A stretch of 64,000 nucleotides of DNA from Pocillopora damicornis (Eukaryota): positions 186,001-250,000 of the forward strand of contig NW_020846834.1 in NCBI RefSeq assembly GCF_003704095.1, written 5' to 3'. Position 1 is the first letter of the stretch. Every line of letters begins with the position of its first letter. This document shows positions 253 through 62,889 of this stretch, one piece after another. Under the pieces are notes generated by a model. That model did not search any database. It saw only the letters and a list, made by a program, of their open reading frames with translations, and had not been told where the DNA came from. The position numbers and the translations under genes were made by a program.

Positions 253-3200
253 TTACACATCACTTTGTATTGGTAAGCGAGACGCAACGACGCGTGTTTG
301 TTTTTTGTCCTCGTCGGCATCTCCGGCTCGTTCCTGTACCGCAAATTTTTTGTCCAGCTGTTCGACGCTATTCATTTTTCTAGTGTCCATGCTTTCTGAA
401 TCTCTTCTTAGAGCCGTAAGTGTATTTTGTCTGGATTCCCATACATCACTGGGATTATCAACGAATACATTGTCAGTGTCCCTGTCATCATTATCCGTGT
501 AATGATCAGTTCCTAACGAATTTCGTGGAGTTGAATTTGGTTCTGATGACGTGGGAGTTTGAGGTTCCAAAGGACTCATTAAAACTGCATCTAAGTCAAG
601 ATATTCCTGGAAAGTATTTAAAAAAGAATGGGTTAATTTCATCTAATTAAACAATTTCGAGTTACTTATGTACCCCTTCCTACTACACTAGGGAATTCCC
701 TTTGCCTTAGCTAGAGATCGTGCAGACGACGTTAATAAGTATTATCAAATTCTAGAAAGACACAGAATAAAAGAAGAATGAACAAGGAGTAAGGAGAATT
801 GCTGTCCACAATTCAAAACTTTTCATTTAACCCTTTACACCCTAACATCAGTATGCATATTCTCCATACTGTTTTCTAAACATTTCCTAAGGTGTTGACA
901 AGGAGAATTTGTCTAATAATCAAGAGCTTCTTAAGTTGGCGATCACTTCCTTTATTCTCGTGACCATAATGTTTGATTCAGGAGTGATATGGTGAGGAGA
1001 AATTAAATGCCAATCACTCGTAGGGTTAAAAGGTTAAACAACTTTGTTATGAACGTGCACCCTTTCTTCTTGATATAGGTTATTCCCTCAACTCAGTCAA
1101 AGGAAATTAAAGATAGTGCAGATGATGTTTGTAATTAATAACAAATTTTGACAAGCAATAGAATAGAAAGAGTGTGAAAAAAAAAAAAACAAAGAGAAAC
1201 ACTGATGATCAAGAAAAACGATACTAACCTTGTCCGACAGGGACACCAACATAGCGTCAAACTCTTGGACTAATTCTTGAAAGGTTGGTCTGTGCAGCGG
1301 CAAATCTTTCCAACATTTAAACATAATTTCATATCTAAGGGAAACGGAGAGACCTAAGGCATGTTATATCTCATAAAGATCGGGCTGTTACGTGCGGAAT
1401 AGTACTCAAGTCATTCTAGAAAAAGCTTTGCGGTTGACTCAGCCATTAGCTTACAGCAGTAAAGTATCACTGATTGAACAACAAAAGTGCGTTGTCTGAG
1501 GCTAAATTTAAATATTTCCAAAAAAAATATCCTTAGCCACTCACATGTTGTCAGGACAATTCAAAGGTTTCTCCATTCTGTGTCCAGACTTCAGAAGCTC
1601 AAAAAGGTTTTCCAAAGGTACACCAGGATACGGTGAGCCACCTAGTCACGAAAAAAGGGCCAAAACGAAATTTTTAATTCCTGTTCCAAGCTTAATTATG
1701 TCTCTGTTACAAAAAAGATTCTCATAAACTCGGTGTTGGCTGATTTACCTTTCACATCGCCTTTCCTTATTCCCTTTCAAAAAACACTCCATGTTAATGA
1801 AAAATAATTTAATTTACTTACCGAAAGTAACTATTTCCCACAAGAGTATGCCAAACGCCCACCTGCAAGAGGTAGAGAATTGACATAGTACTATTATCAG
1901 CAATATTATTATTATAATCATCATTGTTATTAATATCATTTTTAATCTTAAGATTATTATTATTTTCACCACTATCATCATCATCATCATCATCACTTCT
2001 ATCTCCACTATCAATGTTATCATAATTACTTTTCTTTTTTGTATGCAGAGTACTTCGAATGGTGCTAAAAGATAAGATTTCATTTGTTCATTTTGTGTGG
2101 TGATGTCTTTCACCATCTTCACTCCGCATGAGAGAAAAAAAACTACTTACACATCACTCTGCGTTGTGTAGACCCGATCAAAGAGAGCTTCGATTGCCAT
2201 CCACTTCACTGGAAGGCGACCCTAATGATCAAGACAAAAAATATTGGTGACACAGAGTAGTATCTTAAGATTTGAATACTGCAATCTAATAATTCACTGG
2301 ATTGAGGGGGCAATGGCGAGTGAGATAACAGATCGTGTCGTCATTCAAAAAGGACAGTTCAAACGAGAAAGTGGACGGGTCTTAAGACCAATGGATTTAT
2401 TTTCTATCGTATTCCAACTAACAGAATCAGACTCTTTCAGACTCTTTCAATTGCTAAACCCATGATTCCCTTTTTTCTTTCTTGTTCAAGTTGCGTCTGT
2501 AATCATATTTTTGAATGATATATTTTCGGAAAAATACACACACTTTCGTGAAGTCAGTCGTATGACTACAGACCGAATGGAACTCCACTCGGTCCTCTCA
2601 CTAGTGTATAACAAAACTAAGAATCTATTATAGCTTACATCTGTTGTTTTCCTGTAGTAATCGATTTGATGAACATCTCTTGCAAGTCCAAAATCTGCGA
2701 TCTTCATTGTGTTATCCTCTCCAACCAAAATATTCCTTGCCGCGAGATCACGATGAATGCACTGAGAATTAGACAGAAACAATTAACAACTCAGAGACCA
2801 CCACCAAATCTCCTCCAACAAGCTAAGAGTGTTTAGGGAAGGGTGGCTTTACAAGTTGGTGTCAGAGGATTAAATGGGATTCCACCCTGCTAATCGCCAG
2901 GTTTCAATTCCTTCTCCCAACAGCCTTTGAAAAGAAGTTGACGGCTTTACTTTCTTTCATTGTGTAAATTAAAACTCCATGATATCATGAAATTAAAACT
3001 CGATTACATCCCCTGAAATCATTTGGGTTATTCTCTCAGCTAGATTTGTTCCTTTTCAGAAATGAAGATGGATGATATACAAAACACTAACCTTCTTTGA
3101 AGAAAGATATTCCATTCCTCTCACAATTTGATAGGCAAAAGAGACTAAGTCTTTGAGGGTTAGGGTGGTCGTGTATTCCCTGGTCGGTCTCCTATCTTTT

Positions 3201-6200
3201 AAGAATTGTCTTAGGTTACCATTAGGCGCGTACTCCACTACAACAAACAGCGGACCTGAGAATGAAGAGCATAATGGTAGAATCATGGTTTAGTTTAACA
3301 TCCCTACCAACGAGAGGAGAAAAAACGTTTTTCCGTGGTGTGGAGTAATCAACTAACCTCCCTGTGTGCAGGCTCCGATTAAATTGATAATATTCTTGTG
3401 TTTTCCAATAGTTTTCATCACCTCCATCTCTGATATAAGATCTGCAAGTTCGTGTTCAGTGGCATCCTCTGAAATAAATGACAGGATTGACCGTTTCAAT
3501 TAAAAGGGGTGAGATAACGTTAATAAGAATTGTGAATGTTAAGATATTTTTCGGTGAGGGTAAAAATTTTAAGTCGGTGAAGTTCTTCAATTCAGCAATC
3601 ACATACAAGTCTGTTTTTGACAATAACGAAACTCGGGCAGCCTCAGTGACGCATTCAGACCTTGAGGGAGGTATAATTCAGATACACAAGAAAATCAACC
3701 CCACCTTTCAACATTTTCACAGCAACCTCGAATCTGTAGGGCATATTGGGTAATCCAAGCGCTTCAGCCTTCATGACTTTACCAAAAGCTCCTTCTCCAA
3801 GAAGCCCCAACAACACGATCTGCTCCCTATCAATTTCCCATTTTTGGTCCAATGGCATTTCCACTTCTGACACTTGTGTCAAATTAGAACCCATTCGAAG
3901 GCGCAAACTGTTCTGACGTAATAATGGAACCGTAGACCCGTAAGACGAAGAGGAACCGACCGATGTCGCATGTGTCCTAAACTGGACAGCAAGTTCGTTA
4001 GGTTTATCAGGGGAAACCATACCATAATCAGCGCTTTTATAGAACTTAAGCTTGCGATGGCAGACGAAGAACCCCAATGCAAAACACACCAAAACCATGA
4101 ATGAGATGGTAAACACTACAATGTACATATTCTTTTTTGATTGTGGCAAATCAGCTTTCACTATTTGTGCCTCCACATTCCGGTTGGGGGGAAAAGAGGT
4201 GATGTTTACGGCGCTGATCGTGTTAGGCTGTGACGAAGTTGTTTGTTCTGAAGAAAAAAATAAAAGAGTATTATTTCATTAATTAATGGTTAATTCGTCC
4301 ACTCGATCCTTCGAGCATTGATCGGCTGGTTCGTTCACTTGATCGCGCTTAAGATACTTCACGCATCCCTCTGTGTATTCCTTCTTTAACCCTTATTTAT
4401 TCAGATTTATCTATTACTTAAAAACCAAAAATTTTCATCATAATTATTTATTAAACTATTCAAATTATTCATTAAATCATCATCTTCGTAACTATCTCAC
4501 CTGGCCGATCGCGAACGGAAATGTAAGCATGTTCGACTGCGTAGCCGACAGCATTACCCACAATGCAAGTGTACTTGCCCACGTCCTTCTTCGTAACATT
4601 TACCAAAGTCAACTTCACTCCGTGGAAATCAAACTTTTTGCCACTAGTTGGTGGTACGATTACATGTTGGTCTGCGTCGTCCTTATTCACGATTTCGTAG
4701 TGTGGACTTTCAATTGAACCGTTAGTCGAACTATTGGAATGCGTGTGAAACCACCTCAGCCACTGGAAATGAGGCATGGAATCACTTAATGCTTTGCATG
4801 TTAAGCTGGCATTTTCTCCTCGATAGACCGTGACATTTTCCATGGGAAGGACTACTGGTTCAGCACGAGCTCGTTCTGAAACACAGGGTTCATTAAAGTG
4901 TTGGAAGTACACAGTACACATAGGACAGTTATTACGAGGTTGCTCACAACAACCGACAGACTAACTGTTTAAGACAGAGAGAGACATGATGATTGAATAA
5001 CTAAGTTGCAAATTTGCTAATTCAATAATTGACCGACTCTTTCTTTTTGAGAGAAGGGATCGGAAATGTACAACTTACTTCGGAGAATGGGATCTTCCGA
5101 GAACAAAAAAGCATTTAATAGCAAAATTTAAGAGTGAACCAAGAATTCTTTTACCACTAGATTTGTCCTTACCATGAACGTCTACTTTGTATGTATGATT
5201 AATCCACCCGTATGAGTTGCTCACATTACAAGTGTATGACCCAGTGTCAGAGGGAACCAAGTCCTTCAGATTCAATATATTTGTCCTTTGACTCAGATAC
5301 AATTTGTTGCCACCTTTCCTTTCCGTAAACAATTTTCCGTCTTTGTACCATTTCACGGTGGGAGGAGGGTTTCCATCGGCAGAACAGTCCAGCTTTACAG
5401 AGTTACCAACGGGTACTGCAAGAAGGTTGCGCATCATCTTGTTGTGATGCACCGTAAATTTTGGAGCAACTGCGATATACAGAATAACCACGGTTGAGGC
5501 AAAGTCGCTTTTTCAACATTTTCAGCCAGTGCATGCATTGAACGATCTCCCACTCAATAAAGAATTTTAAAGCGGAAAGTCTCGCTTTATTTCCGACTTG
5601 ACGCATGGAATGGTGTCACAAATTTAGACCTTACAAATGGCTGAAGGTATTATTTATCCGCCAAGTATAATCTATCCTACTTAAACTGCATCTCAGTAAA
5701 TTCAGATGTCGGCAAAAAATTCGTTCATTGAGAATTAAGCTTCGAGGGGGAGTAAGTAAGTAAGTAAGTAAAGCTTTTATACAGGCCCAAGTGGTCCATG
5801 GGGCCAGTGCTTAACTCCGGTTTTCTTAGCATGAAGCGGCTGGGAGTATTGCTACTCCCCCCTGGATAGGATGCTATTCCATTGCAGGGTTACCCTCAGC
5901 ACATTTGTTGGTACCTATTTGTACACCTGGGTGAAGAGAAGCGCTGTGAGAGTAGAGTGTCTCGCCTAAGAACACAACACAATGACCCCGGCCAGGGCTC
6001 GAACCCAGACCACCCGATCCGGAGTCGAGCGCACTAACCACGACGCCACGCGCCTCCACAAGGGGTAAGGGGGGAGGGGCGGGGGGGGAGAGCAGACGTA
6101 ACTTGATTCAATTTTGTACGTCACTTTGAAGCACAACCTTTCAACCCTTTAATTCATAGAGGTGATTAACATGTATCTTCTTCCCATAACATTATTATCC

Positions 6201-62628: not shown

Positions 62629-62889
62629 TTAACGTCTCATAAGCTTTCCAAGCATCTGCCTCAGGTTCCTGCGATGTTTTCTTGTCTGAGCGTTTGGCTG
62701 CTGGTATCGCAAGAAATAACTGCATTTACTTTTGCAATTGGCACTCTTGATTCCGCTCAAAATACGACCCCGTCTGGAGAAACCCAAGATCCATTGTGGA
62801 TACTTGGCTGATCTGTATTGGTCATAGCCCTTAACATCTTCTTGGTAAAACTCGCACCTCTTCATCGTTGAAAATTCTTGCTTTTTCTT
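62629..62889 (-). CDS. FGF: Terminal coding exon of a fibroblast growth factor ligand (upstream exons outside the window)
   Basis: Acceptor ttttattttag at 62890-62891, phase 0. Translation KKKQEFSTMKRCEFYQEDVKGYDQYRSAKYPQWILGFSRRGRILSG...KCSYFLRY matches the FGF beta-trefoil C-terminal signature C-x-F...GY-xx-Y-x-S-xx-Y-xx-W-xx-G-F-xxx-G. Basic tail RKHRRNLR. Confidence 0.85.
   Translation of the reverse strand, partial: KKKQEFSTMKRCEFYQEDVKGYDQYRSAKYPQWILGFSRRGRILSGIKSANCKSKCSYFLRYQQPNAQTRKHRRNLRQMLGKLMRR

Follow-up and report, generated by a model that had tools for sequence, protein, structure and literature searches.

In the human genome, FGFR2, FGFR1 and FGFR4 lie on chromosomes 10, 8 and 5, together with FGF8, FGF17 and FGF18, at distances of megabases. 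One study describes FGF8 (chromosome 10), FGF17 (8) and FGF18 (5) as marking paralogous regions, with NPM- or FBXW-type neighbours flanking the vertebrate genes (PMC2446394). Birnbaum, Popovici and Roubin (2005, as cited in PMC2754479) put forward an ancestral bilaterian linkage of FGFR and FGF8/17/18. The human arrangement would be a remnant of that linkage. PMC2754479, citing Matus et al. 2007, also gives the order FGFRL1 - Sprouty - FGF8a - FGF8b on Nematostella scaffold 51 and places no FGFR there. Relationships between cnidarian FGFs and bilaterian subfamilies are described in another study as "not fully established", with low support, although four Nematostella FGFs group with FGF8/17/18/24 (PMC3420111). 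In Nematostella, a feedback loop at the aboral pole involves co-expression of an FGFR with two FGF ligands (bioRxiv 10.1101/2023.06.07.544043). We found no description of an FGF neighbourhood in corals in the literature searched; the public annotation of the coral Pocillopora damicornis contains the genes described below under the same family names, but names them singly.

We analyzed a 64,000-nucleotide stretch of P. damicornis DNA (the window; contig C3469:186001-250000), for which the original prediction was a complete FGFR and an FGF ligand exon on the same strand ~50 kb apart, possibly a tight ancestral ligand-receptor cluster. That picture is partial: about 143 kb of C3469 carries four FGF8/17/18-type genes (FGF_A to FGF_D), two Sprouty genes and one FGFR (Table 1), and the Sprouty genes and three of the ligand genes lie beyond the window. 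These four are the only FGF8/17/18-type genes seen in the P. damicornis genome, and the FGFR is the only FGFR-type kinase on the contig. The three ligand genes outside the window and one Sprouty lie 12-58 kb past the 3' end of FGFR, free of gaps, with the nearest ligand gene ending 19 kb past that 3' end. The segment C3469:92449-217411 contains no N and spans Sprouty-1 through FGFR, including FGF_A, FGF_B, FGF_C and Sprouty-2, and ligand and receptor thus share one uninterrupted stretch for these three ligands; two gaps separate FGF_D from FGFR. We consider it probable (about 0.85) that the window covers one edge of an FGF-signalling neighbourhood conserved in anthozoans, and that FGFR-FGF8/17/18 linkage is an ancient synteny that has been retained and locally amplified. 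At the start of C3469 there are also FGFR-D2-like Ig exons without a kinase.

Table 1 Features of the FGF neighbourhood and of the window. Positions are those of the window unless prefixed C3469 (contig).
Feature	Position	Strand	Remark
Sprouty-1	C3469 108.1-109.1 kb (C3469:108142-109113)	+	Pfam PF05210 97.8 bits (cut-off 25)
FGF_A	C3469 127.7-132.8 kb	-	
FGF_B	C3469 145.9-149.6 kb	+	
FGF_C	C3469 157.6-167.0 kb	+	
Sprouty-2	C3469 172.9-173.7 kb (C3469:172904-173734)	-	Pfam PF05210 80.6 bits (cut-off 25)
FGFR, coding region complete	253..13115 (C3469 186.25-199.1 kb)	-	open frames and public model mapping
FGFR signal-peptide exon	13038-13115	-	
FGFR Ig1 exon	7317-7622	-	
FGFR Ig2 exon	5156-5470	-	
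FGFR Ig3 exon	4487-4882	-	
FGFR TM/juxtamembrane exon	3706-4248	-	
FGFR kinase exons	between 3499 and 1229	-	
FGFR C-tail	253-609	-	
About six unrelated genes, including GPR157-like	C3469, between FGFR and FGF_D		
GPR157-like GPCR gene	30007..32100	+	Pfam 7tm_2 and 7tm_1; named orthologues "G-protein coupled receptor 157(-like)"
GPR157-like exons, three	about 30007-30696, 30865-31107, 31921-32100	+	
Assembly gap 1	31412..31511		in last intron of GPR157-like gene
Open reading frame, 303 aa	36758..37669	+	no Pfam family
Open reading frame, 277 aa, membrane-like protein	39028..39861	-	no Pfam family
Retroelement reverse transcriptase fragment, two open frames	52671..53988	+	Pfam RVT_1 72.5 bits
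Assembly gap 2	55185..55284		unbridged; join backed indirectly
FGF_D	C3469 248.6-251.4 kb	-	carries the originally predicted exon
FGF_D last exon with stop	62629..62889	-	Pfam FGF 28.9 bits, profile positions 71-120
FGF_D middle core exon	63466..63608	-	Pfam FGF 30.0 bits, profile positions 31-71
FGF_D 5' exons	C3469:250863-251365		past window end

The coral neighbourhood resembles the bilaterian and vertebrate linkage in having FGF8/17/18-type ligands and an FGFR on one chromosome segment. It differs in scale, as the coral distances are tens of kb rather than megabases, and in that the four ligands would stem from local duplication, not whole-genome duplication, with Sprouty genes inside the block. 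In another anthozoan, Nematostella, scaffold 51 likewise links FGF8-type ligands and Sprouty to an Ig receptor of the FGFR family, but there the receptor is the kinase-less FGFRL1, whereas in the coral a kinase-bearing FGFR stands between ligands.

The receptor gene is complete, as originally proposed. The public 896-aa P. damicornis FGFR (P0452) maps to the minus strand of the window, where its Met lies at 13115, its final residue at 256 and the stop at 253-255, and 799 of its 896 residues are covered by HSPs of at least 90% identity; public models are XP_027054240.1 (FGFR2-like) and RMX37444.1 (pdam_00011700). A signal peptide, three Ig domains, one TM helix (a hydrophobic segment at P0452 residues 403-423) and a tyrosine kinase are all present; Pfam assigns Ig to three exons and PK_Tyr_Ser-Thr to the kinase exons. 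When compared with the PDB, the best 60 matches of a kinase exon are all FGFR1-4 (~72 bits), and the best single-domain matches of the Ig2 exon are D2 of FGFR1, FGFR2 and FGFR3 (~98 bits). The full-length representatives looked up from a larger search are named FGFRs from several phyla, the exceptions being an insect model without a name and a Nematostella entry labelled "predicted protein". The gene lacks an acid box: the sequence separating the Ig1 and Ig2 exons has no acidic open frame, P0452 has a single acidic residue in its Ig1-Ig2 linker, and among 12-residue stretches of its ectodomain the most acidic one (4 D/E) is in Ig3. Outside vertebrates, this element is variable.

The ligand exon in the window was correctly recognized as an FGF last exon following a phase 0 intron, with its acceptor (...ttttag/AAG) at 62889 and its stop at 62629-62631. 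A middle exon, flanked by a phase 1 intron upstream and a phase 0 intron downstream, had been overlooked; each of the two passes the Pfam FGF (PF00167) cut-off of 24 bits alone. Residues 144-229 of P0471 match the last exon with 100% identity, and the ligand gene continues past position 64000, as had been expected. A transcript-derived 222-aa protein (P0091) joins the FGF_D exons and starts with a hydrophobic leader, predicting a secreted protein, and transcript-derived contigs encode spliced FGF_A to FGF_D and FGFR proteins. FGF_D corresponds to the public models XP_027054247/8 ("FGF18-like", pdam_00011707); XP_027054245.1 is FGF8b-like in the P. damicornis RefSeq annotation. Human FGF18 is the top PDB match for all three core exons of FGF_D, with human FGF8b alongside it: the last exon matches 4cjm (26 bits, E 9.3e-5), in whose alignment the FGF18 segment cited in the original prediction is identical; the middle exon scores 19.3 bits with FGF18 and 17.5 bits with FGF8b; and exon 1b matches FGF18 and FGF8b as the only FGFs.

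To place the four ligands in a subfamily, we ranked PDB scores and compared automatic names; their grouping was examined in an exon-3 tree of 22 genes that does not include bilaterian FGFs. A PF00167 scan of the whole genome gave 37 exon matches, eight of them on C3469, making up the four genes. Exon 2 has an FGF8/18-like strand pattern in all four, a pattern found in none of the exon-2 pieces listed from other contigs. A profile of the four exon 3s scores 55.4 bits with FGF8b, 54.9 with FGF18 and 39.7 with FGF2, and a profile of the four exon 2s scores 47.2 bits with FGF18, 43.1 with FGF8b and 24.5 with FGF2; FGF8b and FGF18 stand 15-23 bits over any other natural FGF, while for control profiles built from the remaining FGFs of the genome the top match is FGF1 (64.5 bits) or FGF2 (63.3 bits). 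In the tree, FGF_A to FGF_D fall on one side of a branch with modest support (68/83), and FGF_D and FGF_C are sisters (86/69). Names given to orthologues by the NCBI and UniRef pipelines are FGF8-, FGF8b- or FGF18-like. Judged by sequence, the four are paralogues of FGF8/17/18 type, in agreement with the resemblance originally noted, and FGF_C is the nearest relative of FGF_D.

The predicted recurrence of the linkage in other anthozoans was borne out in other corals and Exaiptasia. Gene order in these species was inferred from accession or locus-tag numbering and equal longest-contig size, which is suggestive and carries no map coordinates. In P. meandrina, one 5.56-Mb contig holds FGF_A (CAH3122981), FGF_B (...983), FGF_C (...985), FGFR (...989) and FGF_D (CAH3123003). 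One Oculina chromosome carries orthologues of FGF_A (G006056) and FGFR (G006060) and the GPR157-like gene (G006071), and one 712-kb Exaiptasia scaffold carries the FGFR orthologue KXJ23083 and an "FGF18/FGF8" (KXJ23098). By the same indicators, the FGFR orthologue shares a contig with at least one FGF8-type orthologue in P. meandrina, P. verrucosa, Oculina and Exaiptasia, and probably in A. millepora, where the longest contig of the FGF_B-type cluster equals that of FGFR. Ligands lie together on a 1.10-Mb Stylophora scaffold (FGF_D PFX31057, FGF_C PFX31072, FGF_B PFX31073) and on a 3.45-Mb Desmophyllum scaffold (GPR157-like KAJ7336573, FGF_C orthologue ...579, FGF_A orthologue ...581). Part of the gene set was not recovered in Stylophora, Desmophyllum and P. 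verrucosa, and FGFR was not identified in the first two. By these indicators, Oculina and Exaiptasia show the linkage, and Desmophyllum and Acropora show it with less certainty. In Nematostella, both FGFRs are on one 18.1-Mb chromosome and GPR157 is on another. Among 13 loci on coral host contigs in metagenomes, three carry the Sprouty-2 orthologue with an FGF_C-type last exon 5-7 kb downstream of it, in the convergent arrangement seen in P. damicornis; one Sprouty-2-type locus (L069) has no FGF exon across 9.4 kb downstream, and none of the 13 has an FGFR exon within the upstream sequence covered (at most 10 kb).

The proposed same-strand linkage holds in the assembly, with both genes on the minus strand and 49.5 kb (13115 to 62629) plus two gaps between them, neither of which touches coding exons of FGFR or FGF_D. 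The cluster is not tight: the intervening DNA carries a GPR157-like gene, a fragment of a retroelement and at least three additional open reading frames, and the pdam locus tags go from 11700 for FGFR to 11707 for FGF_D. Read depth over the reverse transcriptase fragment is high and mixed. A mis-join or inversion of the FGF_D block would make the 50-kb same-strand linkage unreal. The join at gap 1 is backed by the GPR157-like gene that crosses it, whose exons are collinear in order and strand in five of six orthologue or transcript proteins (tblastn). Gap 2 was bridged by read contigs in none of four sequencing runs; contigs extend into it by ~880-900 letters on the left side and by 67 on the right, which makes its true length greater than the 100 N written. 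As the 13.9-kb FGF_D block (C3469:241285-255224) has a gap on either side, its placement and orientation, and with them the strand agreement, depend on scaffolding. We nevertheless regard an artefact as very improbable, because the separate P. meandrina assembly has the FGF_D orthologue on the contig of FGFR and FGF_A to FGF_C, after FGFR in accession order, and the Stylophora orthologue is 15 records from FGF_C on one scaffold.

The four ligands could instead form an FGF group specific to cnidarians whose similarity to FGF8/17/18 is due to convergence or retained ancestral characters, in which case linkage to FGFR would be uninformative on the bilaterian FGF8/17/18-FGFR paralogon. The low support reported for cnidarian-bilaterian relationships in PMC3420111 leaves room for this reading, but the grouping of four Nematostella FGFs given there argues against it, as do the margins in two independent exon profiles with differing controls, the exon 1b matches and the orthologue names, and we judge it unlikely. 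Somewhat less doubtful, though still tentative, is the idea, in line with the original suggestion of co-regulation, that ligand, antagonist and receptor are kept together by putative shared enhancers or one chromatin domain and switched on jointly. The gene order shared among pocilloporids and, to a lesser extent, with Oculina, Desmophyllum and Exaiptasia, the conserved convergent Sprouty-2/FGF_C spacing and, by analogy, the aboral co-expression described for Nematostella (bioRxiv 10.1101/2023.06.07.544043) may point this way; yet unrelated genes lie within the block, the four ligands differ in direction, and slow rearrangement by itself could account for retention across corals.

We therefore return to ancient synteny with local amplification. 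The four ligands would derive from local duplication of one ancestral FGF8-type gene already near Sprouty and FGFR. Going by known family roles, the ligands would be secreted and would bind FGFR at its D2-D3 Ig domains, activating the kinase; Sprouty would act as an intracellular feedback antagonist. The coral linkage would be the same as that proposed for FGFR and FGF8/17/18 in bilaterians and seen for FGFRL1, Sprouty and FGF8a/b in Nematostella. The neighbourhood does not represent a novel type of operon-like unit; such linkage had already been proposed for bilaterians and published, with FGFRL1, for Nematostella, and the genes are already annotated publicly. The original observation is confirmed and its interpretation partly supported, in the linkage and FGF8/17/18 type though not in the tightness. 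A ligand-receptor linkage proposed for other animals is now extended to a stony coral.

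The linkage of an FGF ligand to an FGF receptor (FGFR) on this DNA, originally predicted from one receptor gene and one FGF exon about 50 kb apart, is real and somewhat richer than that prediction saw. Contig C3469, which holds the window at 186001-250000, carries four FGF8/17/18-type genes that are expressed (here FGF_A to FGF_D), two Sprouty genes and an FGFR gene, which is complete; they are arranged in the order given in the table. Scanning the whole genome (234 Mb, 4393 contigs) with an FGF profile yielded 37 FGF exon matches, eight of which belong to the four genes on C3469 (364,844 bp); two of the five Sprouty matches genome-wide also fall on this contig, together with a single FGFR-type kinase. 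We positioned the genes by mapping transcript-derived proteins to the contig, and the stretch from Sprouty-1 through FGFR (C3469 92449-217411) contains zero gaps. FGF_C ends 19 kb past the receptor's 3' end, with Sprouty-2 in between; the receptor's nearest ligand is therefore FGF_C, and not FGF_D, the gene that holds the predicted exon.

Positions of genes and gene fragments in and around the FGF neighbourhood of contig C3469
Feature	Position on C3469	Position in window	Strand	Remarks
Sprouty-1	108.1-109.1 kb		+
FGF_A	127.7-132.8 kb		-
FGF_B	145.9-149.6 kb		+
FGF_C	157.6-167.0 kb		+
Sprouty-2	172.9-173.7 kb		-
FGFR	186.25-199.1 kb	253-13115	-	three Ig exons, TM/juxtamembrane exon, tyrosine-kinase exons in open frames
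Intervening genes	between FGFR and FGF_D
ORF		23274-23741
GPR157-like receptor gene		30007-32100	+	three exons
Second diverged GPR157-like fragment		33650-33964	+	TM6-TM7
ORF		36758-37669
ORF		39028-39861
ORF		41038-41496
Reverse-transcriptase fragment		52671-53988
FGF_D	248.6-251.4 kb		-
FGF_D last exon		62629-62889	-	Pfam FGF 28.9 bits
FGF_D middle exon		63466-63608	-	Pfam FGF 30.0 bits; missed by the original prediction
FGF_D 5' exons, including hydrophobic leader	250863-251365		-	just past window end

The receptor gene is complete, as predicted: its open frames encode the Ig, transmembrane and kinase exons, and the public 896-residue P. damicornis FGFR model (P0452; XP_027054240.1, 'FGFR2-like') maps along the full span, from window position 13115 to 256, with 799 of 896 residues covered by alignments of at least 90% identity. 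Among solved structures, FGFR1-4 make up all of the top 60 matches to the kinase exon, and FGFR D2 domains are the best single-domain matches to the D2 exon. A large protein search with the TM/juxtamembrane exon returned fragments as top matches, and the full-length representatives examined were mostly FGFRs, from distant phyla. We looked for an acid box between the Ig1 and Ig2 exons (window 5470-7317) and found none; in the public model, the linker joining Ig1 to Ig2 is short and holds one acidic residue only.

The predicted ligand exon corresponds exactly to the last exon of an FGF gene, with an acceptor at 62889, a phase-0 intron and a stop codon at 62629-62631. We searched FGF_D one exon at a time, and its last exon, scored alone, exceeds the 24-bit Pfam FGF cut-off; the middle exon, scored in the same way, also exceeds it. 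The gene could be completed past position 64000, where its 5' exons lie. A transcript-derived protein of 222 residues (P0091, from a 968-bp contig of public read assemblies) unites the last, middle and 5' exons, indicating that FGF_D is spliced and expressed.

FGF18 (4cjm) is the top solved-structure match for all three core exons of FGF_D, FGF8b is among the matches for each, and these two are the sole FGFs matched by the first core exon. A profile of the last exon from the four C3469 genes scored FGF8b at 55.4 bits and FGF18 at 54.9 bits, followed by FGF2 as the next natural FGF (39.7 bits), and the corresponding middle-exon profile scored FGF18 at 47.2, FGF8b at 43.1 and, next among natural FGFs, FGF2 at 24.5 bits. 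Control last-exon profiles from other FGFs placed FGF1 first (set A4, 64.5 bits) or FGF2 first (set A5, 63.3 bits; next FGF18, 52.2 bits), which shows that the score ranking discriminates subfamilies. Automatic names of the orthologues concur (FGF8-like, FGF8b-like, FGF18-like). These results uphold the predicted FGF8/17/18 likeness of the exon, and by score ranking, as distinct from a phylogeny with bilaterian sequences, all four C3469 ligands are of FGF8/17/18 type. An FGF8/18-like middle exon is common to all four, and none of the exon-2 pieces listed from other contigs has this pattern. In a last-exon tree of 22 genes, drawn from 24 exon-3-type scan matches with C1153:237795 and C2:262429 left out, the four C3469 FGFs fall on one side of a branch (support 68/83), with FGF_D sister to FGF_C (86/69).

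FGFR and FGF_D share one contig and the minus strand, but they are not the tight pair originally proposed, since unrelated genes lie between them; in the public annotation, FGFR has locus tag pdam_00011700 and FGF_D has pdam_00011707. One intervening gene encodes a GPR157-like receptor, for which Pfam found nothing on the short GPCR exons beyond the first. The second, diverged GPR157-like fragment begins 1.5 kb past the intact gene, is ~27-36% identical to orthologues, and is probably a partial duplicate or pseudogene. A TM7-like frame at 33854-33988, considered as the last exon of the intact gene, belongs to this fragment instead.

Two assembly gaps bear on whether the linkage could reflect a mis-join, and both leave the coding exons of FGFR and FGF_D untouched. 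Gap 1 (31412-31511) falls within the GPR157-like gene, in its last intron. In tblastn searches, five of the six proteins used, orthologues or transcript-derived, aligned collinearly on both sides of it (blocks at ~30007-30696 and 30865-31107, then 31921-32100), supporting the join; these five comprise proteins of Porites, Acropora, Nematostella and Exaiptasia and one transcript-derived protein, with 89-93% identity over its three exons. Gap 2 (55185-55284) was bridged by none of the contigs from four runs of four studies over 52600-58400. Read contigs extend into this gap by ~880-900 letters on its left side and 67 on its right, which makes it longer than the 100 N written. Just to its right, at 55510-55703, summed contig depth increases by a factor of 30 to 70 in each of the four runs, pointing to a short high-copy repeat. 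FGF_D sits in a 13.9-kb block bounded by gap 2 and a 561-N gap, and its placement and strand here therefore rest on scaffolding. Although no read contig spans gap 2, gene order in other assemblies, read from accession order on a shared contig, indirectly supports the placement: the orthologues of FGF_A, FGF_B, FGF_C, FGFR and FGF_D are CAH3122981, 2983, 2985, 2989 and 3003 on one 5.56-Mb contig of P. meandrina, and a 1.10-Mb Stylophora scaffold carries the FGF_D, FGF_C and FGF_B orthologues as PFX31057, 31072 and 31073.

We compared other anthozoans by contig identity and accession or locus-tag order, which is weaker than coordinates. Exon-wise comparison separates two anthozoan FGFR paralogue groups. 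The window FGFR groups with Oculina 'FGFR4-like', Montipora and Acropora FGFR2/3-like, Exaiptasia 'FGFR3' and Nematostella 'FGFR3'; Nematostella P0146 belongs to the other group and, used as a query, still recovered the window FGFR's orthologues. One Oculina chromosome carries orthologues of FGF_A (G006056, KAL9983820) and FGFR (G006060, KAL9983824), a GPR157-like gene (G006071) and the other FGFR paralogue (G006036/37). GPR157-like KAJ7336573 and the orthologues of FGF_C (KAJ7336579) and FGF_A (KAJ7336581) share a 3.45-Mb Desmophyllum scaffold, and the FGFR orthologue KXJ23083 and FGF18/FGF8 gene KXJ23098 share a 712-kb Exaiptasia scaffold. FGFR and FGF_A, FGF_B and FGF_D lie on one 36.6-Mb chromosome of P. 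verrucosa. The Acropora millepora FGFR orthologue is on a 37.39-Mb chromosome, the same size as the longest contig of the FGF_B-type cluster, and Nematostella has both FGFRs on one 18.1-Mb chromosome and GPR157 on another. By contig identity and order rather than coordinates, the gene order, or at least co-location, thus recurs in other anthozoans, in keeping with the predicted ancestral linkage.

Coral host contigs from public metagenomes provide evidence directly from sequence: at three of 13 Sprouty-2-type loci, the Sprouty-2 orthologue is followed 5-7 kb downstream by a convergent FGF_C-type last exon, matching the P. damicornis arrangement (5.9 kb); one locus with 9.4 kb of downstream sequence contains no FGF exon there. 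None of the 13 has an FGFR exon within the ≤10 kb available upstream, an uninformative absence because the P. damicornis distance between Sprouty-2 and FGFR is 12.5 kb.

The genome search also located further genes of this pathway. Two tandem FGFR-type kinase genes lie at C3335:216199-233017 and 255595-255894; they show 61-64% identity in one kinase exon and are probably members of the second group of anthozoan FGFR paralogues. By matching contig sizes, the two groups sit together on a single scaffold or chromosome in Oculina, A. digitifera, A. cervicornis and Nematostella. The small contig C4130 (7883-15852; loci L051, L052 and L055) bears exons for Ig1, Ig2 (in two copies) and Ig3, with 70-84% identity to the window FGFR ectodomain; one Ig2 match has three in-frame TGA codons, no TM/kinase match was found alongside, and the locus may be either a decaying duplicate or a paralogue with an ectodomain only. 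Three more Sprouty-domain genes cluster within 7 kb at C3576:125313-132089, a contig for which the genome scan reported no FGF-profile match. On the far side of the C3469 neighbourhood is an ADP-ribosylglycohydrolase-family ORF (92510-93130, minus strand; Pfam 94 bits).

Human FGFR4, FGFR2 and FGFR1 lie at 5q35, 10q and 8p, and human SPRY genes may adjoin FGF1/2 as neighbour pairs, for which a literature search returned no printed confirmation. To our knowledge, a ligand and its own receptor in one gene cluster are rare in animals, and most arguments so far about where the FGF8/17/18-FGFR paralogy regions came from rest on bilaterian data. The human FGF8, FGF17 and FGF18 paralogous regions are assigned to chromosomes 10, 8 and 5 (PMC2446394). 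Linkage of FGFR with FGF8/17/18 in the bilaterian ancestor was proposed by Birnbaum, Popovici and Roubin (2005), as cited in PMC2754479, whose authors propose adding FGFRL1 to the block. In their account, Nematostella scaffold 51 holds FGFRL1, Sprouty, FGF8a and FGF8b together, with no FGFR found there; four of 13 Nematostella FGFs are described as grouping with FGF8/17/18/24 (PMC3420111). At the start of C3469, FGFR-like Ig2- and Ig3-type exons (412-720, 12829-14127 and 34138-34425, minus strand; loci L053 and L054) are 33-45% identical to the window FGFR, and no FGFR-type kinase exon was found near them. They may belong to an FGFRL1-like gene or a second receptor gene; an FGFRL1-like gene here would mirror scaffold 51. 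A full-text literature search, covering articles without supplements, found no publication on a coral FGF-Sprouty-FGFR neighbourhood. The coral neighbourhood extends the published linkage idea to corals, and is no new kind of system.

Going by the roles of these families, the ligands would be secreted proteins that bind domains D2-D3 of the receptor, and Sprouty would damp the pathway inside the cell; the four ligands may have arisen by local duplication beside a pre-existing Sprouty and FGFR. The co-regulation raised in the original prediction, with shared enhancers or one chromatin domain keeping the genes together, is a putative explanation that we consider doubtful. Our broadest reading, to which we give roughly a one-in-five chance, is that the cnidarian-bilaterian ancestor had a compact cassette, at one locus, made up of an FGF8-type ligand gene, Sprouty and FGFR, and perhaps FGFRL1 as well. 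Corals would then keep it near-intact in one regulatory domain coupling ligand, receptor and feedback inhibitor, and its scattered remains in vertebrates would be the FGF8/17/18-FGFR chromosomes.

A compact coral neighbourhood in which the receptor lies with four ligands of FGF8 type and two Sprouty genes, recurring across stony corals and in part in a sea anemone, dates the linkage to at least the anthozoan ancestor. If passive retention alone accounts for it, the neighbourhood would still help, as a synteny anchor, in naming cnidarian FGFs. It also offers a small, tractable locus for testing whether shared regulation keeps signalling partners together.
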